A stretch of DNA of 63,962 nucleotides, counting the filler, from Octopus bimaculoides (Eukaryota): assembly GCF_001194135.2 (NCBI RefSeq). It is 6 parts of 4 records of this genome, joined end to end, with 100 filler letters (N's around TTAATTAATTAA, not from the genome) between each part and the next. Parts side by side here need not be neighbours in the genome. Positions count along the whole stretch, not along the records: positions 50,088 to 62,837 come from NC_068992.1; 5 more parts are not named here. One strand, given 5' to 3'. The notes beneath the pieces are model-generated. The model did not search any database. It was not told where the DNA came from and was given only the letters and a program-made list of their open reading frames with translations. The position numbers and the translations under genes were made by a program. Below, piece after piece: positions 49,573-63,714 of this stretch (position 1 is the stretch's first letter; each line of letters starts with the position of its first letter).

Positions 49573-51009
49573 TAAATATACGATATTTTCACGCTGACTA
49601 CTTGATAAATTCTTATAAAGATTTTATCCTATATTATATTATAAATAATTAGAATATATTCAGTGCTGAATATTATTCTGTATAAGCACATGTTACTGAG
49701 ATGCAACCGGATAAATTCTAATCTCTTTCACGGATATATAATGATGAACAGAAGTCATCGTACTATGTTGGGTACATCGTGGTATGTTGATTCTTGTTTA
49801 TTTTTATGTGTCTCGACCATACGTGTACTGATGAACAAAAGATGCAGCTTACTTCACAGTTTTGCTGTATTGATTGAGAAACCAGTGGTTTGCCGTTAAG
49901 TTAAATGTTTTTAGGAGATTAATTTTGAAAGCTGCATTTCCTCGCTTTCGGTAAATATGTTGCTTATTTTTTGGTAGTTTTTGACTTNNNNNNNNNNNNN
50001 NNNNNNNNNNNNNNNNNNNNNNNNNNNNNNNTTAATTAATTAANNNNNNNNNNNNNNNNNNNNNNNNNNNNNNNNNNNNNNNNNNNNTATATATATGTAT
50101 GTATGTATATATATAGTTATGGAGTGTTGCTGCCATTCAACAATTTTAATAACTACACGTGATTCGAAACCGTTCCGGTGATATGGATTATACGTAAAGG
50201 ATTTATAATAATTAATATTATTTATTCATTTACTTCTTGTAATTAATATATTTACATGTTTCTATACGTATATTCATATATGCATGACAACAGCGATGCT
50301 ATTCATTATTGGTGATAATGTGAAGGAATTAGCTACCATTACGGATTTCTTTCTTTGTTTACTATCGAAAATACCTATTCAGCAATTGACAGATGTCTCA
50401 AGTGCAAAAAAATTGACTCGAATGGAAACTTGCTCTTCATTTCACAGGGTGAAATTATTGAATTTCTTCATAAATCACTTCGACTTCTCTTTTTTTTGTT
50501 TTTTATTGTCATTAACTGTAAATGTATATAAACAATATTGATTTTCTGTTTATCGTGTATAAATTCTATGCAAAACACTTAACATTACATGTTGCCGAAA
50601 GTTTATGCGAAACGTAAACATCGTTGGAATTTTATGAGTTTTGACTTTACGTGAATATAAATACAGATTGATGTATATACATATAAACAGCAACATTGAA
50701 TGGAAAAGAACTAAAGCATGTTATCTGATATATAACCACAGGAATCAAAGAAAAACTGAATAAGTTATTTCTTCCACCAGTCTTTGGAAATTATAAACAA
50801 GAAACATGTTCTAACAAAAATTTGCTCAAATACAACTGCTGTAAAATATAAATTGCTTTTGGCAAAGGATAACACAAAACGTGCATTCTCTCTATTTAAT
50901 CTTGACTGAAGATTTGATCTCTTTTTCAAATTAGTGCGTATCACCTGTGAAATCTCGTTGAATCTCATGACATAAACTTGTTCATGTCATCCTTAAATTA
51001 ACAAGACTA

Positions 51010-52776
51010 ATGAACAGAAAGTCGTGGCTCTCTGTCAGAACTATAATGACTTTCATAATGATCAACAGTTGCATATGTGCGACAACATCGTTTCCTATCC
51101 CAGCAGTTAACAAGTTCGATCGTCTGCCACGCAATAGACAAGCTTCATCCCAGTACCAATACCAACAACAGCGAAGACGTTTGCAGAGACAGTTAGCTCA
51201 ACAACCAGCCGGCTTTTGTTTAGAAACCTGGGACGACACTACAGTACCTTGTGAACAGGACTTAAATAACATATGCGTCAACGAAAACTGGTCTCTTCTG
51301 GATTTTACCAAAGCGAGAAACCATGCATCCTTACTACCTCCGTCATTTATAAACTCGATCGATTCCAATTTTGCTAAGGACAGCAACATCGAAGCCAACG
51401 TCCAAGAATATGTTGATCTTAGTGCACAAGGTACTCAATGTAAAGTAACCAATTATCAAAACAACCCAATATTTTCTTGGGGTCAATGGAAAAATATATG
51501 TTTTCAAAGGTGGATGACTTTATTGAGGCGTCGTTTGAGTACGGCTCGACTCGGCGACTTAGTTATTCCAGGCACTCATAACAGTGCATCTTTTTCTGTA
51601 TCACCAAATGGTACTTTGGTGGAAAAACTTTGGATTTCACGTGTTGCTTTAAGCCTTGGATTTAGTAATTATTTCAGCTCGTGGGCTAGAAACCATGACG
51701 ACGGATTAGGTGCGCAGCTTAATGCTGGTTACCGATGTCTTGATTTACGAATCGCCTTGCTACCAAATGGAGGATTTTACTGGTGGCATGGCATATCTGG
51801 AGAGGCCATTGAGTCTGGCTTAAAAGAAATTGCTAATTTTGCGACAGAGAATCCAGGAGAGATTATTATACTTTTAATTTCCCACTTAAATGCACCCGGT
51901 AACGGAATTCAAGAGAAATTACCAATGCCAGGTGAGTCCAAGATCAGACTTGGTAAATATTTATTATCTATTTTAGGACCAAATCTTGTCCCAACTCGGA
52001 ACATTTCTTTAAATCCTACCTTATCAAGTGTCATCTCTACGGGACGTAATATCATTGCTCTGATCCGGGAAGATCAAGATTTAGTAAATGCCTTCCCGGA
52101 TTATTTCTGGAGCGATGTCAACAACGAAACAGCAGTGGAAATGTTTGAACGAAGAACTAACCCTCGGAGTATGTTTACACATCGTTCTGACATCATGCAG
52201 AAATATAAGAGGAATTTTCCTGACAGGTTAGCCATCACACCGGCTTTTGTGACACACAATGTTCCAAATGTGTTGGGAGGAATATTAAGAAGCAAACGCG
52301 TGGCTTGGGCTCTTTCGTTAGTTTTGACAATTATGTTCTATCGATTAATCCAATCGTCGGAAAATAAGGACTTTACGAAATTGTTCTGTACCGGATTAAA
52401 AAGGCGAAGTCCCGTAAAAGCTGCCAGAGTCACTGTGATATACCTGTTGATTATTATAATATCTGTGTATTTAGGTCATTTACAACACAGAACTATACTA
52501 AAACTTTTCGGATTTGAAGGTAAAGCCACAAATTTGATAGAAATGGCACGAATAGCTAATCTTTGCGGGGATGATCCAAGTAAAGCTAACGGGGAGGTAA
52601 TTTATAAAGGCATAAATTCTATGATTCGGCACTGGTCGGACAGAGAACAAAAATATAGATTAAACATCGTCCTGGTTGATGATTTTTCATCCAGCCAAGC
52701 GGTGAGGACAGCTATACAAGAAAACATTCGGAGAACGGATATAGACAGATATAACATGAAAACGAAGTTTAGTTGA
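51010..52776 (+). CDS. Single-exon PI-PLC X-domain protein (PLCXD/bacterial PI-PLC-like), predicted secreted and membrane-anchored, 588 aa
   Basis: 1767-bp uninterrupted non-repetitive ORF. Motifs: WMT.L....LGDLVIPGTHNS (His190), QLNAGYRCLDLR (Asp245/Arg247), FYWWHG (His260), F..ENPGEIIIL, and terminal LNIVLVDDF. Hydrophobic N-terminus and four N-x-S/T sequons (N93, N200, N331, N372). Confidence 0.92.
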   Translation: MNRKSWLSVRTIMTFIMINSCICATTSFPIPAVNKFDRLPRNRQASSQYQYQQQRRRLQRQLAQQPAGFCLETWDDTTVPCEQDLNNICVNENWSLLDFTKARNHASLLPPSFINSIDSNFAKDSNIEANVQEYVDLSAQGTQCKVTNYQNNPIFSWGQWKNICFQRWMTLLRRRLSTARLGDLVIPGTHNSASFSVSPNGTLVEKLWISRVALSLGFSNYFSSWARNHDDGLGAQLNAGYRCLDLRIALLPNGGFYWWHGISGEAIESGLKEIANFATENPGEIIILLISHLNAPGNGIQEKLPMPGESKIRLGKYLLSILGPNLVPTRNISLNPTLSSVISTGRNIIALIREDQDLVNAFPDYFWSDVNNETAVEMFERRTNPRSMFTHRSDIMQKYKRNFPDRLAITPAFVTHNVPNVLGGILRSKRVAWALSLVLTIMFYRLIQSSENKDFTKLFCTGLKRRSPVKAARVTVIYLLIIIISVYLGHLQHRTILKLFGFEGKATNLIEMARIANLCGDDPSKANGEVIYKGINSMIRHWSDREQKYRLNIVLVDDFSSSQAVRTAIQENIRRTDIDRYNMKTKFS

Positions 52777-52992
52777 AACAGGAGACATTGCACAAAACCT
52801 AGAATATAAGCAACGCACAAACACACACGCACACACATACACACATACACATACATGCACACACACACACATACACACACATACACACACACAAGCCACA
52901 CATAACCCAACACATATACATGTACATATACAAAAGCACTTACATTTATATATGTATATATGTGCATATCTATCTATCTATCTATCTATCTA

Positions 52993-53031
<39 letters not shown>

Positions 53032-53317
53032 GCATGTATATATATATGTATATATANNNNNNNNNNNNNNNNNNNNNNNNNNNNNNNNNNNNNNNNNNNN
53101 NNNNNNNNNNNNNNNNNNNNNNNNNNNNNNNNNNNNNNNNNNNNNNNNNNNNNNNNNNNNNNNNNNNNNNATATATATACATATACATATATAAATTATA
53201 TACATATACACACATATATACATACATGCACACACATGCATGCACATACATGCATGCACACATATGTGTACATACATATATGTATGCATACATACACACA
53301 CATACACACACACGTAC

Positions 53318-53348
<31 letters not shown>

Positions 53349-53411
53349 CATACATACATACACACACATACATACATTTATATAATATTCTATATATACA
53401 TATAATGGCAA

Positions 53412-53417
53412 AATAAA
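53412..53417 (+). terminator. Candidate polyadenylation signal for the PI-PLC gene
   Basis: AATAAA ~640 nt past the stop, after a microsatellite-rich stretch. The hexamer is common in AT-rich DNA. Confidence 0.25.
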
Positions 53418-54775
53418 AGCCATAACGATATCAACAGATCAATGCACAATCAAAAGAAGTCTACCCATTCCGAAAACCAAAACAACAGAATTTTAGATAT
53501 TTTTGTAATAAAAGAGAAAAAAGACATTATTTAAATGAATGATTTGTTATCTTACTGTTTTTATTTCTTAAAGGAACAATTGCTAAATATTTGTCAATCT
53601 TTTGATCTGTGTATATATACATATACATAAAATGGCGAAGCGAACAAAAATAAGATTTGTATATTTTTATGTGAGTTATTTAATATCTTTTATTTAACTG
53701 AAGACGAGTGGGTCATCGCATATAACAACAGAAATACTTTTATAAAGAGAAAATAAAAATTATCTGACGAAGCCGAATAATTTGTTTACATTGGAAGTGT
53801 TATTAATGGAAGTTTCCACATTTATCTGGAACTTACTTTGCATTTGATATCTAAAACAATTAAAAGGTTATTTAAAAAATTTTAACGTTTAATAAACGAT
53901 ATGAATTCTTCAAAACAAATTCTGAACAGAGAACAAAAGCGGTTCTTAAATTTTTCACTGTCGACTAATGGAGTGTATTTGTTTACATTATTCCAAATTG
54001 TGATTCGCCATTTTAAATGTACAAAGATCGAAAAATTAACAAATAGTTTGTTTTCTCTGTTTATGTTAAACGCTTGTAGTTTTCCTTCCTCCCCAACACA
54101 CAAAACATTCCCGTGCACTGACGTATATATATATATATAAATGTTGATGGAATCACCAGAGTAGAGACTATGTTTTAAACCAGTTATCTCTGATTATTTA
54201 CTTTCTCGATGTTATTCAAAGAAATATTTGGTTCTGCAGAACCCCGAACTTCTGTAGGTGTGCATCATGTTTCTTCGTAATAAGTCAATCATTTTTACAT
54301 CTATGATTTCGACACTAGTTTCCAAGGAATGCAATTCAATTGAAAATTCAGTTATCAGGTCGCAGAGGTGCGACGAAAGTTTCTGAATTTTAGTCATAAC
54401 TCGTAGTAATTCACATAAAGGTAGCTTAAATAGTTTATATGTTCTGAAGGTGATACAATATTTCCTAATTTAAACTATTATATTTCTTAATTTGGAGTCG
54501 AGACAGACATTTTGCAATTCTTCCGACAGGGTTACTTACAAGAAGCTTTGGATATATTGTTGATTGATCTGAGGATTCTTCTTGTTTCATACGTGACTAA
54601 TATTTCTTTTCCACTATATGCATCAGGTTGGAGACACATGGTCAAGAGGCTAGAGCAGCGGACTCACGGTCGAAGGATCGAGGGTTCGAATCTCAGACCA
54701 GGCGATACTATCGTATCACTGAATTTAGAAAATAATAAATGATCCAAAAATTCAAATTTCAGAAGAGAAATTACG

Positions 54776-54826
54776 CCTGTGTGGCAGTGAGGTAAGAAGT
54801 TTGCGGTAAGAAGTTTGCATACACAA
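54776..54826 (+). mobile_element. Truncated family B SINE head with internal 14-bp duplication
   Basis: GTGGCAGTGA-GGTAAGAAGTTTGC-GGTAAGAAGTTTGC-ATACACAACC. Confidence 0.55.
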
Positions 54827-55126
54827 CCGTGTACAATTATCGAATGATAATTCGATAACCGTACACGGAAAGAAAAACTATTTCTTCGGCAATTTTCGTA
54901 AAAAAATATACATTAAAAATTTTTTTTCAACTGAATCGCTTATTTCAGCTAATTATTTGAATTAACCCTTCTCAGAAGTGTGAGTAAATACTCCCTCTTC
55001 CGTATTTAATCTTCTGTTTGTTTCAGTCATTGAATTACGGCCGTGATGTGGTACCACCTTGAAGGGTCTGGACGAACAATTCGATCACAGTACGTATTTA
55101 TTAAGCTGAGTACTTATTCTATCGTT

Positions 55127-55192
<66 letters not shown>

Positions 55193-56487
55193 TATATATC
55201 AATATAAATACATATATACATATATATATATAAATATATGTATATATATATGTATATATATATTTAAATATATACATACACACACATATAATATATATAT
55301 ATATACATATACATATATAAATATATATATACACACACATATATATACATAAATAAATATATATGTATATATATATATATATATATATNNNNNNNNNNNN
55401 NNNNNNNNNNNNNNNNNNNNNNNNNNNNNNNNNNNNNNNNNNNNNNNNNNNNNNNNNNNNNNNNNNNNNNNNNNNNNNNNNNNNNNNNNNNNNNNNNNNN
55501 NNNNNNNNNNNNNNNNNNNNATATATATAAATGTATATATATGCGCGAGCACACATACACATACATACGGGAGCACACACAGACATATACGTATGAATGT
55601 ATTTACGTAAGTAGAAGGAAGGCGACTTGGGACACGCTATTCGGGTTTCTATTAAGAGATGGTCTGTATGTTTATGTGTTTGATGTTTGTCTCTCTTTGT
55701 GGATATGCTTTTGTACATGCGTGTATGTGTGTGTTTGCGTGTGTGTATGCGAGCGTGTGATTTGTGTGTGTGTGTGTGTGTGTGTGTGCGAGCGTTTGTC
55801 TATACGCGTGTGCGTTTATGCATTTATGTGATTATACCACGATTAAGATTATACAAACACACACACAGAGGTCTCATAGAGAGCCATCGTTTACATCATA
55901 CGTGTAAAACATACAAAGCCTGAATGAAAACATTCCCTCTAGTCACCCATGATGATAGCCCAGATAGCAGGAAGGAAAGAAAAATAATATAGTTATAAAA
56001 ACAAAAACAAAAACAAAATAAATATGCCACAAAAGACGAAAAAGATAAAAATAAATAAAATAGTATAGCGAGATAGAACAGTTAAAAGGAAACCCTTATA
56101 TCGACATTCCCCACGACAAGGAGTTGTCTTGTCTTGCAGTCAAACACAATTATCAAACAGAATCAACTAAAATTCTCAAAATAGACTCGTTTATCCCGAG
56201 TTATTGACTTAAGTTCTTGTGAGGCGGTGGTGGGAAGAAATTTTACCTAAATTCTTGAGGCTTTTGTTACAAATGTTATCATCTTTGTTTTTGTTATTGT
56301 TTTTTTTGTTTTTTTTCATGTTTTACGTTCTTGCTAGTTTACATTTTTGTGGTAAAAGTTGGAGAGTATATTGGAAAAAAAAAAAAAAAAGGGGAAGCAA
56401 AAAATGAAGGATAGCTGTCAAAATAATTATACGGTAAATCAGGCATTAGAAAAACGTCAGAAATCACCCGACGCTCCTTAATTTTGT

Positions 56488-56541
<54 letters not shown>

Positions 56542-56559
56542 CACACACACACACACAAT

Positions 56560-56830
56560 ATCAGTACGAGCAACAGAAATACGGCGCCAAGCAGTGACGA
56601 AGAAATAATAATAATAAAAACAGTAATAATAATAGAAGGTCGTGGTCAATGAAGAGAGTAGACGTGATACCAATAGTAATTGGTGCACTTGGAAGTATCA
56701 GCAGTTAACTGCTAACATGACCGAAAAAGATTGGTGCAAGTGTGAAGGTAGAACACCTACAATAATCAGCATTGCTTGGAACTGCAAGAATTCTTCATAG
56801 GGTTCTTGAAGCATGACCAGTAAACAAGTG
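56560..56830 (+). mobile_element. R4/Dong-like RLE 3' end remnant
   Basis: RSWSMKRVDVIPIVIGALGSI...HLQ*SALLGTARILHRVLEA*. Confidence 0.7.
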
Positions 56831-57628
56831 TCACCTTAGTCTGCTGGCGTGCGTGAGTGTGTGCAAGTGCGCGCGCGCGCGAAACAGCTTACTGTCATTG
56901 CTTATCCTGCGTAACCATATAAAGTTCGCGGCTGATGACATAAAGCGGATCGCATGACGTATCTCGAGTGCGGTCAAGACTCACTATTTATGATTTAATA
57001 ACAGCTTCACAACATTATCCATATTTAAATAAATAGCTTCTTCTATCCAACCGTCACAATACTAAACCAACAAAATAACAGAACACCAGTAAAATACACA
57101 ATAAAATAACTTCCATTCAAATATGACGGACTAAATTTCAAGCAGAAGATGGAGAAAATTACAATTGATTATAGTTGAACTAAATCTAATAGGAACTTAC
57201 GATTGAAAGGTCATGACAATGTAGTTAAATCATTTACTTAGCTCATTATTATATCCTCTTTCACACAAGCCCTAATACACGAAACATTTTAACCTTAGAA
57301 ATGCGTGTAATAACAATGTACTGTTTTTGATATCAACATGAAACTCGAGTAAAACGTTCAAGACTCTAAAAGCAATTGTATTAGTTATGGTACCGATGCT
57401 ACACACGTATTTATGTATGTATGTCATTATTCAGTTTTGTTTCAAGATTTCTTGTCAATAGAGAAAGAACCAGTTTCTGACCTGGATCCAAAGCTCCGAC
57501 ATTGAAATTTCAACATCTACAGGGTACATTTGTATGTATGTAATTCTGTATGTATGTATGTATGTATGTATGTATGTATGTATACGTGCAGGTATGTATA
57601 TGTATATGGTATTTTAACATAAATTGTT

Positions 57629-57738
57629 TTGACAGTGACTTCGAACTTTCGGTCTTTTTAGCGTTCATTGAACAGTTCAGTGATGACAAAGCGGGCCGCA
57701 ACTTCGAAGTCCATGCCAACCTTATTCTTGCTAAAGAA
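57629..57738. repeat. Palindromic interspersed repeat, copy 2
   Basis: TTGACAGTGACTTCGAACTTTCGG...AACAGT...TGATGAC...GGCCGCAACTTCGAAG...CCTTATTCTTGCTAA aligns with 5573-5678. Confidence 0.6.
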
Positions 57739-57816
57739 TGATAAATGTGCTCTAAAAAAAATATTGAATCCTTCAGTTTAAAATAATATGTTACTATAAA
57801 TCAACACAGAAATAAA

Positions 57817-57854
<38 letters not shown>

Positions 57855-58681
57855 AACACAAACACTTTCGGGTACGTTAGTTATACTGTATAAGAAATTA
57901 TTTTCACAACAGCTTATTCATGTTATCAAAGAAAAGAAAAACCACCTTCCAAATGTGGAAAGATAGATTAATAGTCAGTAGTCATGTCTGAATGAAAGAA
58001 TATAGCTTGAACTCGTTATTTACTGGAATTATAGAACCACTACAGCTGGCTTACGATTCTCCTAGATTTTTAGCAATAAATAGAATTAATTTTAGTGATG
58101 AAAATCTAGTTTTTGTTGAGAAGAAAGTAAGTTTTATGTTGATAAATTCCCGTAATCGAGGAACCTACAAAATTTAAGTATTTTGGTTGCTTCGAAGAGT
58201 TCTAATGTCTGCGTATAATATATCCATGCTCATACGCACGAACACACATACATTTATATTTATATATATACATATATGCAATAATATATATACATACGTA
58301 GGGCGATTTAAATTGCTCGACAATTATCCAGAATGCACGCCATCTATTAAAAAAACATAAAAGAAATCATGAGGGGAGCTTATATTTTTGCTTACATATT
58401 ATTTGTTTGAAATTCAGTATTTCATATGTCACAGTGAACGTATAGAGATTAAAGTTTGTTTATAAGATATTTGGTTACATTACTATTCGCATGTTTCATT
58501 AACAAAAATGAACATTACTTATATAACAAATTATATAATGAAATTCCGTTGTCAAATCTTCAGAGATGCGCAACTTGTATTCGTAATATTACTGGTTTAC
58601 TGATAATGTTGCCAGAACATATAAGCACACATCTGAGTAAAGAGTCACCAATTCACTAAATGTGTCTTGAATGTATGCGTC

Positions 58682-58724
<43 letters not shown>

Positions 58725-60092
58725 NNNNNNNNNNNNNNNNNNNNNNNNNNNNNNNNNNNNNNNNNNNNNNNNNNNNNNNNNNNNNNNNNNNNNNNNNNNN
58801 NNNNNNNNNNNNNNNNNNNNNNNNNNNNNNNNNNNNNNNNNNNNNNNNNNNNNNNNNNNNNNNNNNNNNNNNNNNNNNNNNNNNNNNNNNNNNNNNNNNN
58901 NNNNNNNNNNNNNNNNNNNNNNNNNNNNNNNNNNNNNNNNNNNNNNNNNNNNNNNNNNNNNNNNNNNNNNNNNNNNNNNNNNNNNNNNNNNNNNNNNNNN
59001 NNNNNNNNNNNNNNNNNNNNNNNNNNNNNNNNNNNNNNNNNNNNNNNNNNNNNNNNNNNNNNNNNNNNNNNNNNNNNNNNNNNNNNNNNNNNNNNNNNNN
59101 NNNNNNNNNNNNNNNNNNNNNNNNNNNNNNNNNNNNNNNNNNNNNNNNNNNNNNNNNNNNNNNNNNNNNNNNNNNNNNNNNNNNNNNNNNNNNNNNNNNN
59201 NNNNNNNNNNNNNNNNNNNNNNNNNNNNNNNNNNNNNNNNNNNNNNNNNNNATATATATATATATATATACATACATATATATATATATATATACATATA
59301 TATATGTATGTATATATGTAGGTAGGTATACCAGTTCTTATAGGAGTTGTGGATTAGCTGCTCTACTCTTTCTAAATCCGGTACATATAACATCATACTA
59401 CTTACATTAAAACTTGATAATCTAGCTCCAAATTCACACAGTATAAACATTATTCGTATTATTACTAAAAAAAGAAGTCGACTAGATCCTTGTGGTAATA
59501 TATTGTTTTTAAAGGTTTTCCTAAAAATGTTGCAACACGTTATGTCATGCTATTCACCGTAAATTACAGTTAGATGTATTTAACAGAGATTTCCGAGAGA
59601 TCTATCAAAACGTCGATTATTTGAACAGTGCTGTTATCGAAGAAAGTGATAACGTCAGAAATTTGAGTCAATGACCTATGTAATACCGAAGAGCATTAAC
59701 AAGCAGAAATTATTGACGTTTATCAGTGTATAAGAATAGATGAATTAGAATTGGGTTATAATTACTCAGCTCGATGAATCATCGATTTTTCAATAGTTGT
59801 ATTGCATTTTATCTTGTAGCTGACATATTTATAAATCGCTCATTCATGTAATATCTAATTAAAAATTGTATAATAACATTGATTGAATGATAGTTAGCTA
59901 ATGAGAATATTTGTGTGGGTGATAGTGACCAAGTATCAGCTCTACTTTCTGCGAGTACAAATATAATGTAGAAATTCTGTTTCATTTCTGGAAGTCATAA
60001 ATTACGTTAATTCTGCAAACGTGCATGTTTTTATTACACTGACAGTTATCTTCTACTTGTCCACTTGGTCATGTGTGCCTGTGTTTGAATGT

Positions 60093-60136
<44 letters not shown>

Positions 60137-60184
60137 CCAATGACGAAAGAAGCAATTATTATTATTATTATTATNNNNNNNNNN

Positions 60185-60261
<77 letters not shown>

Positions 60262-60299
60262 TTCATCATCTTCATTATTATAATAATAAATATTATAAT

Positions 60300-60963
60300 T
60301 CAGTAGTCTTATTTTTATCACATGCTTTCACTGCAATACCGAGCGCAGCTCTGTGTACCTTGGTTATGTGCTGTGGTTTGTTGTGATGCTCTTATTTTCA
60401 CTGTATTGAAAGTGTTTTACGTAGGATGTGTGCAGGGCCTAGTAGTGCCATTTTCTGTATTTATATATATTTGTTAGTCCTGACGTTTTTGTTATGTATT
60501 TGTCTGAATATTTTTTTATCATACCTAAAGCGCCCACTATGGTAGGAATTGTTGTTGTTATTATTATTATTGTTCAGTAGTTTTATTTTTATAACGTGCT
60601 TTCACTTCACTACCGAGCGCAGCTCCGTGCGCCTTGGGTATGTGCTGTGGTTTGCTGTGGTGCTCTTATGGTTACTGTATTGAAAGTGTTTTGTGTAGGA
60701 TGTGTGCTGTGCCCAGTAGTGCAATTTTCTGTATGTTATATATATTTGTAAGTCCTGGTGTTTTTGTTATGTATTTGTCTGAATATTTTTTTATTATACC
60801 TAATGCACCTACTATAATAGGAATTGTTTCTGCTTTTAGATTCCACATTCGCGTTACCTCTATTTCCAGGTCTTTGTATTTTGAAAGTTTTTCCATTTCT
60901 TTTAGAGAGACGTTGTCATCTGCTGGTATTGATACATCAATTAGAAAGCATTTTTTTTTCTTT
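60300..60963 (-). mobile_element. Two tandem 3' ends of an R4/Dong-like element embedded in (TAA)n
   Basis: KCFLIDVSIPADDNVSLKEMEKLSKYKDLEIEVTRMWNLKAETIPIIVGALG...ALLGTAHILHKTLSIQ*. A second diverged 3' end at ~60300-60548. (TTA)n arrays flank on both sides. Confidence 0.85.
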
Positions 60964-61150
60964 NNNNNNNNNNNNNNNNNNNNNNNNNNNNNNNNNNNNN
61001 NNNNNNNNNNNNNNNNNNNNNNNNNNNNNNNNNNNNNNNNNNNNNNNNNNNNNNNNNNNNNNNNNNNNNNNNNNNNNNNNNNNNNNNNNNNNNNNNNNNN
61101 NNNNNNNNNNNNNNNNNNNNNNNNNNNNNNNNNNNNNNNNNNNNNNNNNN

Positions 61151-61262
<112 letters not shown>

Positions 61263-63714
61263 CAATTCTCTTCCGCATAAATGTCATTTATGCATGAGCT
61301 GTCTCAACGATGGGAATTCCTCATAAACTAGCCTTATCATTGGAGATGAACCGTAGGAAGAAATAGATATTCCTGAAGTTGCTTGAGTGACTTCAGCTGC
61401 TCCGAGTTCAACCTTCGTCCAAATTGAACTGAGTCTGTGACAAGTTGATCTACCCACTCGCTCTCTCTCTCTCTCTCTTTCTCATTCTTTCTCTCTCCTC
61501 TCATCATTTTTTTCCTTTTTTGTTACTTCGCATCTTTCATACTTTCCCATCTGTTTTTCTACGTTCTGATAACGATCAACAAAAATACTTTTATCGTCTG
61601 CTCGCAACTTTTTCATTTCGTTATTGTTTTTCGTTTTCGTTTTTGTCTTATTTTCTGGTTGTTGTCATAGCTGATGTTGTTGGTAGTGATGATGGCGTCG
61701 GAATTGTAGTTGTAGTAGGGGTGGTAGTTTGGTTTTCGTTGTTATTGGTGGTGGTGGTTGAGGTGGTTGTCGTTGAGGTGGTAGTAATAGTAGTAGTAGT
61801 AATGATAATATTAGTAATAGGAGTAGGGAAGGATATTGTTCTTCTGTTGCTAATGTTTTTCTTTATATTTTAGTTCTTGCCAAAATCATTTCAATAAAAA
61901 CGCACATTAATTCTCCTCCTCCTTCTCCGTCGTCGTCGTTGTCGTCATAATGATAATGATAAGGGTAAGAGTCATCATTATCATTTTCGTCATCATTCTC
62001 GTCATCATCCTTGTAATCATTTTCATCATCATCGTCATCGTCATCGTCATCAACATGCGTTTTGACACTATAATATGATAACCAAGCGAATTCTTCCTGT
62101 TCAGATGGCGTCGTGTCGTCTTAAAGAACCCACTTGCTAGTTGTAGTCCAGATAAACGCTACGTCTGATACAACCAAACCAGATTGTCATGGTTAGAACG
62201 CCTCTGATAATATTGTTTAATCAGGGTTAATCCGGGATTAAACAGCAACAGCAAGAACAACGACAACACTAAAAACAACAACAACGACAACAACAGTGAC
62301 ATCAAGAACTACACTAACAACATTAATACCAACCAAGGGAAGGGCTGTATAAGGTTGCTTGTCTTGCTAGAAATAGAGACCAAACTTACTTCAAAATATA
62401 TCCTACTGTCTCAGAAATGAACAAATTAGATAATGTGTGTCCAAGGTTCCTCACACGAAGAGGAATTACGGGGCGGTCACCGTTAGATATATCTCAATGA
62501 TAGGTCTGTTCAGTTAGAGCTAACTGACGACAGATCAACAGCGACAACATAAACGAAACTCCAGCAAGACAAAAACAAGAAGAAATATGCTTTAGTGATC
62601 TCCATTGGTAAGATAAGACTATCTTATATAATATCTTGATAGACGGGCTGACTCCAGTATAGATAAGGGGCTTCTTCGGCAAGAAAGTTATGGAAATGTT
62701 TTCGTATTTATTTTTACCCTCGAGAAAACCTTTCTCGTGATTGGGTGGGGTGGGGAGTGAAGTTTACTGCTTTCCAGCTTCTATGTTATCTGTTTGATTA
62801 CACATACATACATACACACACACACACACATATATATNNNNNNNNNNNNNNNNNNNNNNNNNNNNNNNNNNNNNNNNNNNNTTAATTAATTAANNNNNNN
62901 NNNNNNNNNNNNNNNNNNNNNNNNNNNNNNNNNNNNNTATATATATATATATATATATATATGGACATATATATGGACATATATATAGATATATATAAAT
63001 ATGTATGCATGCATGAAATTCCACCACCTTCAATAAACAACTAAAACGAGGTAACCTTCGAACAGTTACTTGAAGTGCAATGAAAATCCATCTAAATATT
63101 TATCAAGCTACGCAACGGAATCACAACGAGATTATGTATACAAACGTACCCCCACCAAAAGAAAAACATCAGCATAACACCAGATGGAATGCTTTTCCAC
63201 CACAGGTTTTTAAGTGAGGCTGACCTTGATCTAAACAACAACGATCGTAGTAAAATAAAGATTTCTGTCTGGCAGGCCGAGAGAGAAAAATAGAATTATT
63301 TTGTGATAATACATAAATAGTTAGTAATCATCGTATATATTTATTTCATTATAAATGCAATACAACACCACGGAGGAATCGACATAAGCTTAAATAAAAA
63401 AAAAACGCGATATGGCGAGAGATTACTGTACATCTGATTAAACATGAAAGACGATTTAATAAATGTTTTTATTTTATTTTGTAGTGCTTCCATCTGGAAG
63501 AAACACTCAGAGTTTTTGTTTTCGTCGTGGTATTACCTAACGGTTGAAAACTAAAACGACAGGTAGCACAATTACCCCAATCTAAATTGTGTGTGTGTGG
63601 TGGTGGTGGTGGTGGGGAGTGCACTATACATACATGCATAGGCACATACCACACATACGCACACACAGATATACAGACATGCATATATATATATATATAT
63701 ATATATGGGAGAAT

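Follow-up and report, generated by a model that had tools for sequence, protein, structure and literature searches.

Can the barrel of a phospholipase C be threaded into the very membrane whose lipids it cleaves? The question is raised by one gene in a 63,962-nucleotide stretch of the Octopus bimaculoides genome (RefSeq assembly GCF_001194135.2), here called the window, along the whole of which positions are counted. The piece at 50088-62837, from NC_068992.1, is AT-rich, microsatellite-rich eukaryotic DNA with assembly gaps and contains a single long open reading frame (ORF), 51010..52776 (+), which translates without interruption into 588 aa and ends in a TGA stop. [quoted passage not shown] The best explanation found here, given slightly better than an even chance on sequence comparison and a structure model, is that of a hairpin-anchored, exoplasmic, bacterial-type PI-PLC-like phosphodiesterase that would act on inositol lipids of its own membrane.

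Fold and catalytic residues

Searches with the single sequence did not place the protein in a family. There was no match by phmmer against the PDB or in the NCBIfam search, the Pfam search gave no GDPD match, and the PI-PLC-X model PF00388 scored 13 bits (E=0.082), below its gathering score of 23.1 bits. The best of the eight sequences aligned as a cephalopod profile (A1) reached E=0.021 with PF00388, and an ordinary PLCXD-like relative, P0033, passes with 30.9 bits. It took profiles and a structure model to make the assignment. Against the PDB, A1 and a broader family profile (A2) matched bacterial PI-PLCs at E=3e-7 and 1.6e-12, respectively, over the region beta1-beta4. These matches are the PI-PLCs of Staphylococcus aureus, Bacillus cereus and Listeria, with the residue-level alignments being to S. 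aureus chains.

An AlphaFold2 model (mbbc1b4004a1e) was built on 17 sequences. Its predicted local distance difference test score (pLDDT) is >90 across most of residues 160-430 and <50 at residues 61-157. The model has strands at 186-189, 243-250, 256-266, 286-296, 348-352, 366-377, 407-412 (beta7) and 553-556 (beta8). In a Foldseek search of the PDB bacterial PI-PLCs take the first 24 places (E 3e-9 to 5e-7, probability 1.0, target TM-score 0.53-0.73), ahead of the eukaryotic PLC catalytic domains. Some alignments run to 437-442 columns against targets of ~300 residues and so span the insert and both barrel halves. As modelled, the protein is shown to have the TIM-barrel fold of the bacterial-type PI-PLCs. 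GDPD and PI-PLC proteins belong to one PLC-like phosphodiesterase superfamily. Foldseek does match GDPD structures, though weakly (E ~4e-3 to 1e-2, target TM-score ~0.3-0.37), and the description of the GDE enzymes as unrelated in the sequence-only reading does not hold.

Translation puts the catalytic motifs where that reading had put them: IPGTHNS at aa 186-192 (His190, nt 51577-51579), LDLR at 244-247 (Asp245, Arg247), WWHG at 258-261 (His260) and NIVLVDDF at 552-559 (nt 52663-52686), with Asp557 and Asp558 at the end of the last strand, directly after model residues 553-556. WARNH lies at 225-229. In the profile alignment to S. aureus PI-PLC, PGTHNS falls on IPGSHDS, SWARNHD on VWAKTQD, CLDLR on FFDIR and WWHG on HHG. 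The catalytic set of the Bacillus enzyme is His32, Asp33, Arg69, His82 and Asp274 (PMC9572076). Both catalytic histidines have a counterpart, His190 aligning with the histidine of IPGSHDS and His260 with that of HHG, and the LDLR motif corresponds to the bacterial Asp-x-Arg of beta2 (FDIR; Asp67, Arg69). Across ~40% sequence divergence His190, Asp245, Arg247, His260 and Asp557 are invariant in all cephalopod sequences (Asp557 in 8/8 of A1), and Asn552 is invariant in 17/17 of the family alignment. The distant relatives P0011, P0016, P0022 and P0030 keep the catalytic residues wherever their sequences cover them. Of the five catalytic positions, three (His190, Arg247, His260) are shown by alignment, and a fourth is probably supplied by Asp557 or Asp558 after the last strand, in the place of Asp274, the partner of His32; the fifth is considered below among the points that weigh against activity.

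Trp225 of WARNH aligns with the tryptophan of S. aureus SVWAKTQD and probably corresponds to the helix-B interfacial Trp47 of the Bacillus thuringiensis enzyme. The replacement of Gln by His in this motif, pointed out in the sequence-only reading, is present and proves to be a trait of a subclade (the cephalopods, P0011, P0016 and P0022) rather than a peculiarity of the octopus gene. It is probably shared by P0030, which is N-truncated and begins NHDGDF, and by P0028, which has the His but no Trp at this position.

The hairpin, its conservation and the gene

An insert had been placed between the penultimate and last barrel elements, and the model puts the hairpin there, between beta7 and beta8. 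The connection consists of a short helix (418-427), a helix of 23 residues (429-451), a low-confidence turn, a helix of 36 residues (469-504) and two more helices, with the 36-residue helix continuing into the one that leads back to the barrel (GFEG). Over the hairpin pLDDT is 52-88. The two hydrophobic runs, VAWALSLVLTIMFY at 431-444 and VTVIYLLIIIISVYLG at 474-489 (nt 52300-52476), and the connecting loop, which ends in KRRSPVKAAR (464-473), are likewise at the places reported before. Segment 2 has a Kyte-Doolittle hydropathy of 2.34 and a summed insertion free energy of ~+0.7 kcal/mol (Hessa scale, approximate values, as for all free energies given here), while segment 1 has a hydropathy of 1.5-1.9 (1.92 over 17 aa). 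In the decapod orthologues segment 1 reaches 2.0-2.7 and both segments lie at 1.9-2.8 and ~-3.3 to +3.0 kcal/mol; on these scales segment 1 is clearly transmembrane-grade there.

Orthologues carrying the insert had been suggested as a check. Two bilayer-length hydrophobic helices are found at a conserved position in 16 sequences, these being 7/7 of the cephalopod sequences and 9 distant relatives. When the composition was preserved and the order shuffled, 316 of 20000 shuffles (1.6%) gave two hydrophobic segments, defined as two 17-aa windows with a Kyte-Doolittle mean of at least 1.9 within 80 aa. Judged from one sequence the significance is modest, and the weight comes from conservation.

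In a TIM barrel the loops directly after the beta strands form the catalytic face. The hairpin departs from the barrel directly behind a beta strand, and the topology of the fold would put it on that face. The PI-PLC of B. thuringiensis enters the membrane with two tryptophans, Trp242 in the beta7-alphaG rim loop and Trp47 in helix B (PMC9572076). The octopus hairpin appears from the model to occupy the beta7 rim loop that bacterial enzymes insert in the bilayer and, as an elaboration of a membrane-contacting loop, should hold the active-site mouth against the membrane that it spans.

The N-terminus of the octopus protein is MNRKSWLSVR-TIMTFIMINSCICA-TT, with a moderate hydropathy peak at aa 12-30 (Kyte-Doolittle 1.57). 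In the orthologues a hydrophobic start lies at the same position and is stronger (1.9-3.0); such a start is present in all full-length cephalopod sequences, in P0011, P0012 and P0034, and in the first exon of a relative at locus L007. O. vulgaris and Argonauta both retain the upstream Met. The signal-like N-terminus, Gln/Arg-rich region, five cysteines and four sequons of the sequence-only reading are all present. The cysteines lie between residues 70 and 164 (C70, C81, C89, C144, C164), and the sequons (N93, N200, N331, N372) are conserved in cephalopods and fall entirely in the predicted exoplasmic part. The protein contains the conserved stretch YQYQQQRRRLQRQLAQQPAG, and the stretch QQQRRRLQRQL..QQPAG, C70, C89, C164 and NWS are conserved in all cephalopod sequences. 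The non-cephalopod relatives are without the N-terminal extension.

Of the residues between the hydrophobic cores (aa 448-471), 6 are Lys/Arg and 2 are Asp/Glu, and the flanks of this segment have 3/0 and 2/1. There are 6-10 Lys/Arg and 1-2 acidic residues in the loops of the cephalopods, and 5-11 Lys/Arg in those of a clade with an extra C-terminal domain. The fit of the basic loop to the positive-inside rule, claimed earlier for the octopus protein, thus extends to most relatives, with 5-11 Lys/Arg in the loop versus 0-3 in the flanks. On the positive-inside rule, and in agreement with a signal-like N-terminus, these charges favour a cytoplasmic loop with both barrel halves exoplasmic.

The closest database proteins are octopod: a partial protein of O. 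sinensis (98% identity), two proteins of O. vulgaris (96%, over a truncated model, and 88%) and one of Argonauta hians (76%). Four further relatives have 59-68% identity, among them P0006, which was found in RNA-seq runs published as Sepia esculenta larval transcriptomes. The octopod orthologues carry the automated name 'PI-PLC X domain-containing protein 1-like', a PLCXD1-like label for what is, by sequence, a member of a distinct clade. The ORF is intact at three octopod loci, namely at the gene in the window and at two loci in O. vulgaris that are ~31 Mb apart on one chromosome record (OX597825.1), where the orthologue has an ORF of 589 aa (L008 6001-7770) and the paralogue lies at L001 9968-11734. 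For the gene in the window and its O. vulgaris orthologue, the ratio of non-synonymous to synonymous substitution rates (dN/dS) comes to 0.083 (Nei-Gojobori). In the barrel it is 0.03-0.08, which is very strong purifying selection, and all 10 changes in hairpin residues 428-504 are synonymous (0 non-synonymous). In larval RNA-seq assemblies of Sepia esculenta (L009-L014) the cuttlefish orthologue was found at full length, with the hairpin. The gene is intact, conserved and under constraint.

Some further features of these copies were noted. Both between the O. vulgaris paralogues and between the window and the paralogue, the synonymous rate (dS) is ~0.10-0.17 in the central barrel (aa 160-427; window 51487-52290) and 0.34-0.77 in the flanks; these values suggest gene conversion of the catalytic core. 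The cuttlefish orthologue occurs in at least 69 blocks of the sequencing-run collection, the traced runs being larval transcriptomes, and in its contigs (L009-L014) the start codon is preceded by 0.7-2 kb of co-linear AT-rich sequence, perhaps a long 5' untranslated region. The O. vulgaris orthologue is annotated as a spliced product of 332 aa (P0009; L008 6001-26625) that follows the ORF up to residue ~308 and then closes with 24 aa unrelated to it, at a locus where the 589-aa ORF is intact. P0009 is either a mis-annotation or a truncated isoform without half the barrel and the hairpin.

An exhaustive profile search returned 4931 relatives, most of them ordinary PLCXD-like proteins of ~330 aa without the insert. 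The hairpin occurs at one position in three groups: the 7 cephalopod sequences; P0011, P0016, P0022 and P0030, which have no extra domain; and P0012, P0028, P0029, P0034 and P0038, in which ~150 aa are added as an extra C-terminal domain and the catalytic positions are partly or largely gone. The hairpin is therefore not unique to the octopus gene but defines a wider clade, part of which is without catalytic residues. Losses in the subclade with the C-terminal domain (loci L002-L006 and L015) include PGTY.., ..HFKV and ..YNG, and its members are likely to be membrane-anchored pseudoenzymes. Among relatives without the hairpin, those of Owenia, Saccoglossus, Ptychodera and the bacterium Pseudoalteromonas are the nearest; the Saccoglossus protein model has a low-confidence loop (268-291) at the hairpin site, followed by an all-beta domain. 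In a neighbour-joining tree of barrel columns only, all hairpin proteins form one clade (bootstrap 59), within which the cephalopods group with P0011, P0016, P0022 and P0030 (bootstrap 94). This is compatible with a single origin of the hairpin.

Of two further searches from the hairpin relatives (profiles A3 and A4, 8000 word-sharing candidates), the first found only the cephalopods and the other found these together with P0038, itself part of the query, and a weak new match, P0169. They missed most of the profile's own non-cephalopod members, probably through the candidate limit; we suspect that low-complexity words crowd out real relatives. Cephalopod coding sequences (CDS) are intronless. 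A non-cephalopod hairpin gene at L007 (488-970, 1248-2294) has an intron between its PGTHNS exon and its NHRGDF exon, and because that gene is split in this way the 340-360-aa proteins P0016, P0022 and P0030 are probably second exons. The Pseudoalteromonas cluster P0015 (WP_125252683.1) is a close homologue (E=9e-62) that branches at the base of the animal group. It has the C-terminal domain of the annelid and hemichordate proteins and N-terminal beta/gamma-crystallin / inhibitor I36 repeats. The gene may have passed from bacteria to marine animals or the other way.

Coordinates of the gene and its parts are collected in the table. Directly downstream of the gene there are dense microsatellites (CA, ATAC, CTA, TA, AC, TC, GT, TTA) and several N runs, with repeat/N stretches at 52816-53377, 55127-55388, 56491-56557, 58680-59317, 60095-60300 and 61151-61262, and the 3' end of the transcript cannot be read in this assembly. 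An ORF fragment at 60672-61265 (-), which adjoins a poly-Ile/TTA repeat and an N gap, contains IPIIVGALGIIKKYSDKYITKTPGL and KIALLGTAHILHKTLSIQ and presumably resembles the C-terminal tails of invertebrate retroelement ORFs. Pfam gave no match for this fragment or for the ORF at 50284-50541.

Table. Parts of the octopus gene, by position in the window
Feature	Position	Strand	Basis
Complete single-exon CDS, 588 aa + TGA	51010..52776	+	Intact O. vulgaris orthologous ORF; dN/dS 0.083
Signal-peptide-like N-terminus, aa 1-26, MNRKSWLSVRTIMTFIMINSCICATT	51010..51087	+	Basic n-region, hydrophobic core, small residues before possible cleavage site
N-terminal extension, aa 27-159	51088..51486	+	Low-confidence in model
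Gln/Arg-rich conserved stretch, aa 47-69	51148-51216	+	Within N-terminal extension
Barrel strands beta1-beta7 and catalytic motifs, aa 160-427	51487..52290	+	pLDDT mostly >90; HMM alignment; Foldseek E=3e-9
Hairpin helix 1, aa 429-451; hydrophobic core VAWALSLVLTIMFYRLI 431-447	52294..52362	+	Model helix, pLDDT ~80
Basic inter-helix loop, aa 452-468, ...GLKRRSP, predicted cytoplasmic	52363..52413	+	Charge count; pLDDT ~52
Hairpin helix 2, aa 469-504; hydrophobic core 472-489	52414..52521	+	Model helix, pLDDT 77-88
C-terminal barrel part, aa 505-588: two helices, beta8, last helix	52522..52773	+	Model strand 553-556, helix 564-587

Proposed mechanism and competing readings

The mechanism that we propose is that of a bacterial-type (Arg-using, Ca-independent style) PI-PLC-like barrel permanently anchored in the membrane by a two-helix transmembrane hairpin. 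A cleavable signal-like N-terminus would take the N-terminal part of the barrel across the endoplasmic reticulum (ER) membrane, helix 1 would cross to the cytoplasm, where the short basic loop would remain, and helix 2 would return the chain to the exoplasmic side, where beta8 would complete the barrel. The active-site mouth would then be held against the exoplasmic leaflet of the spanned membrane, on its lumenal or extracellular side. There, acid-base catalysis by His190 and His260 with Arg247 would cleave the inositol-phosphate-diacylglycerol bond in cis, the candidate substrates being glycosylphosphatidylinositol (GPI) anchors or free GPI/PI in the outer or lumenal leaflet. Membrane insertion, orientation, the membrane-facing active site and the substrate are what we infer from fold, hydropathy and charge; the activity on PI or GPI is purely conjectural.

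Several observations weigh against this explanation. The first barrel motif has Asn191 at the position of bacterial Asp33, the partner of His82, a replacement that was overlooked when the sequence-only reading recognized the catalytic His, His, Asp and Arg now aligned to the bacterial enzymes. The position is Asn, Ser or Ala in every member of the hairpin clade, and Asp in the soluble relatives and bacteria, and Asn191 may reduce or alter activity. The losses in the sister clade indicate that the hairpin scaffold can function without catalysis. With Asp33 replaced by Asn and the active site decayed in the sister subclade, a protein of low activity, or one that only binds, is a real possibility. 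With regard to the membrane, segment 1 is marginal in this octopus (14 uncharged residues, ~+3.9 kcal/mol); the doubt already raised over its length of ~14 aa is borne out for the octopus, but not for the decapod orthologues. There are three Lys/Arg just before helix 1, on the supposed exoplasmic side. Features resembling n-, h- and c-regions are present at the N-terminus, where the putative signal peptide was judged by eye and hydropathy alone, and the sequons are weak evidence, as they lie in generally conserved segments in about the number expected from composition and are lost in distant relatives.

The least improbable of the alternatives, though still unlikely, is a membrane-anchored pseudoenzyme or lipid/GPI-binding protein that would bind an inositol lipid or glycan without efficient turnover. 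It would account for Asn191 throughout the hairpin clade and for the sister subclade, in which P0028, P0029, P0034, P0038 and, in part, P0012 have lost His, Asp or Arg positions. Against it stand the five residues that are invariant in the cephalopods and kept, where covered, in P0011, P0016, P0022 and P0030, and the low dN/dS of the barrel. Somewhat less probable is the opposite orientation, with a cytosolic barrel and a monotopic or ER-anchoring hairpin, acting on PI or phosphoinositides of the cytosolic leaflet. Vertebrate PLCXD2 is reported to lower plasma-membrane phosphatidylinositol 4,5-bisphosphate (PIP2) from the cytosolic side (preprint 10.1101/2024.05.08.592949), the octopus N-terminal hydrophobic segment is moderate, and the gene models P0028, P0029 and P0038 start without one. 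These three, however, are ORF-caller models on eukaryotic contigs and may miss an upstream exon such as that of L007, whereas hydrophobic N-termini are conserved, and strong, in other full-length members. A cytosolic barrel would also give a lumenal loop with 6-11 Lys/Arg and few acidic residues, violating the positive-inside rule, and the loop of 17-39 aa contrasts with the short turn typical of monotopic hairpins.

A soluble secreted or lumenal enzyme, whose helices would pack on the barrel, mediate oligomerisation or form a large interfacial lid, is improbable to much the same degree, if anything fractionally more so. The shortness of segment 1 and its interruption by Arg445, the AlphaFold confidence of the hairpin and the short, weakly charged loops of P0016, P0022 and P0030 speak for it, but segment 2 comprises 18 aliphatic-rich residues with a hydropathy of 2.3, both segments are transmembrane-grade in the decapod orthologues, and connecting loops so strongly basic usually mark a cytoplasmic turn. 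Very improbable is an artefact, in which an in-frame intron left unspliced would pass for the insert, or the ORF would be an intronless retrocopy in decay. The CDS is indeed intronless in a repeat-rich genome and the O. vulgaris orthologue is annotated as the spliced 332-aa product. These candidates were rejected because of the constraint on the hairpin (0 non-synonymous against 10 synonymous changes between species) and because the cuttlefish orthologue carries the hairpin in contigs derived from mRNA; in addition, the ORF is intact at the three octopod loci and distant homologues have the hairpin in the same place.

Beyond the anchored phosphodiesterase itself lies a narrower proposal, that an integral exoplasmic PI-PLC cleaves GPI anchors in cis and so releases GPI-anchored proteins, in cephalopods and other organisms of the hairpin clade. 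This we regard as doubtful. If it were true, there would be a route for shedding GPI-anchored proteins that is independent of the GDE/GDPD enzymes and of GPI-PLD, one that would have arisen when the rim loop with which a soluble PI-PLC dips into the membrane became a transmembrane hairpin, and the interest of the gene would rise sharply with such an ecto-GPI-PLC activity. Were the barrel both exoplasmic and active, a PI/GPI-PLC of the bacterial type would exist in animals on the outer or lumenal side, a long-sought activity by which GPI-anchored proteins are freed. Transmembrane helices inside a catalytic TIM barrel are unusual, and the site is the loop used for transient membrane binding in the soluble bacterial PI-PLCs. 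This suggests that a peripheral lipase could simply have evolved into one integral to the membrane, and on this view the active site should be clamped to a single leaflet. The clade, with its members having degraded active sites, offers a natural series from enzyme to pseudoenzyme.

Comparison with known phosphodiesterases

The best structural and profile matches are the secreted PI-PLCs of bacteria (B. cereus/thuringiensis, S. aureus and Listeria PlcA; 1PTD, 3V16, 1AOD). These have in common with the octopus protein the imperfect TIM barrel, the His/His pair, the Asp-x-Arg of beta2 in which Arg replaces Ca2+, probably an Asp at the end of beta8, the tryptophan of WAKTQD (Trp225) and membrane-contacting elements round the active-site mouth. 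The octopus protein differs in its identity of only 12-17%, in an N-terminal extension of 160 aa and in Asn191 for Asp33. The Bacillus beta7-alphaG rim loop is short and bears Trp242 (PMC9572076), whereas in the octopus there is a hairpin of ~75 aa with two long hydrophobic helices, which would make an integral membrane protein of an enzyme that otherwise binds peripherally and reversibly.

Vertebrate PLCXD1-3 share with the octopus protein a lone X-type barrel without PH, EF or C2 domains, and both histidines are conserved. PLCXD2, reported as a cytosolic peripheral protein that lowers plasma-membrane PIP2 (10.1101/2024.05.08.592949), has no signal peptide or transmembrane hairpin described, and the octopus protein is predicted to face the other side of the membrane. 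The cleavage of GPI anchors by a PLCXD protein appears in the literature solely as an assumption (PMC12236014), and no description of a transmembrane hairpin or of a membrane-anchored PLCXD-like protein was found there, the databases carrying the automated name. The link to PLCXD1 is that name; the octopus protein clusters apart, its nearest soluble members and closest named homologues being those of Saccoglossus (XP_077868603.1), Owenia (CAH1795823.1) and Pseudoalteromonas (WP_125252683.1), with E-values of 1e-62 to 1e-64 and 29-34% identity. They share with it extra helices between beta7 and beta8 and an M/GFEG motif. However, they have no hydrophobic hairpin, with a flexible loop at this place in the Saccoglossus model, they keep the Asp after the first His (PGTHDSG) and the Gln of W-x-x-x-Q, and they have in addition ~150 aa of all-beta domain, with no counterpart in the octopus protein.

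Two eukaryotic systems that act on GPI anchors complete the comparison. The GPI-PLC of Trypanosoma brucei is a eukaryotic homologue of the bacterial-type PI-PLCs that is membrane-associated and cleaves GPI anchors; it is attached by acylation on the cytoplasmic face and is not known to have transmembrane helices. GDE2, GDE3 and GDE6 provide the analogy to the role proposed here, that of a membrane-embedded exoplasmic phosphodiesterase barrel releasing GPI-anchored proteins. Their catalytic domain lies in a loop of a six-transmembrane protein and is metal-dependent. In the octopus protein, which is not a member of the GDPD family, the predicted membrane helices are instead inside the barrel, and the chemistry would be of the His/His/Arg type.

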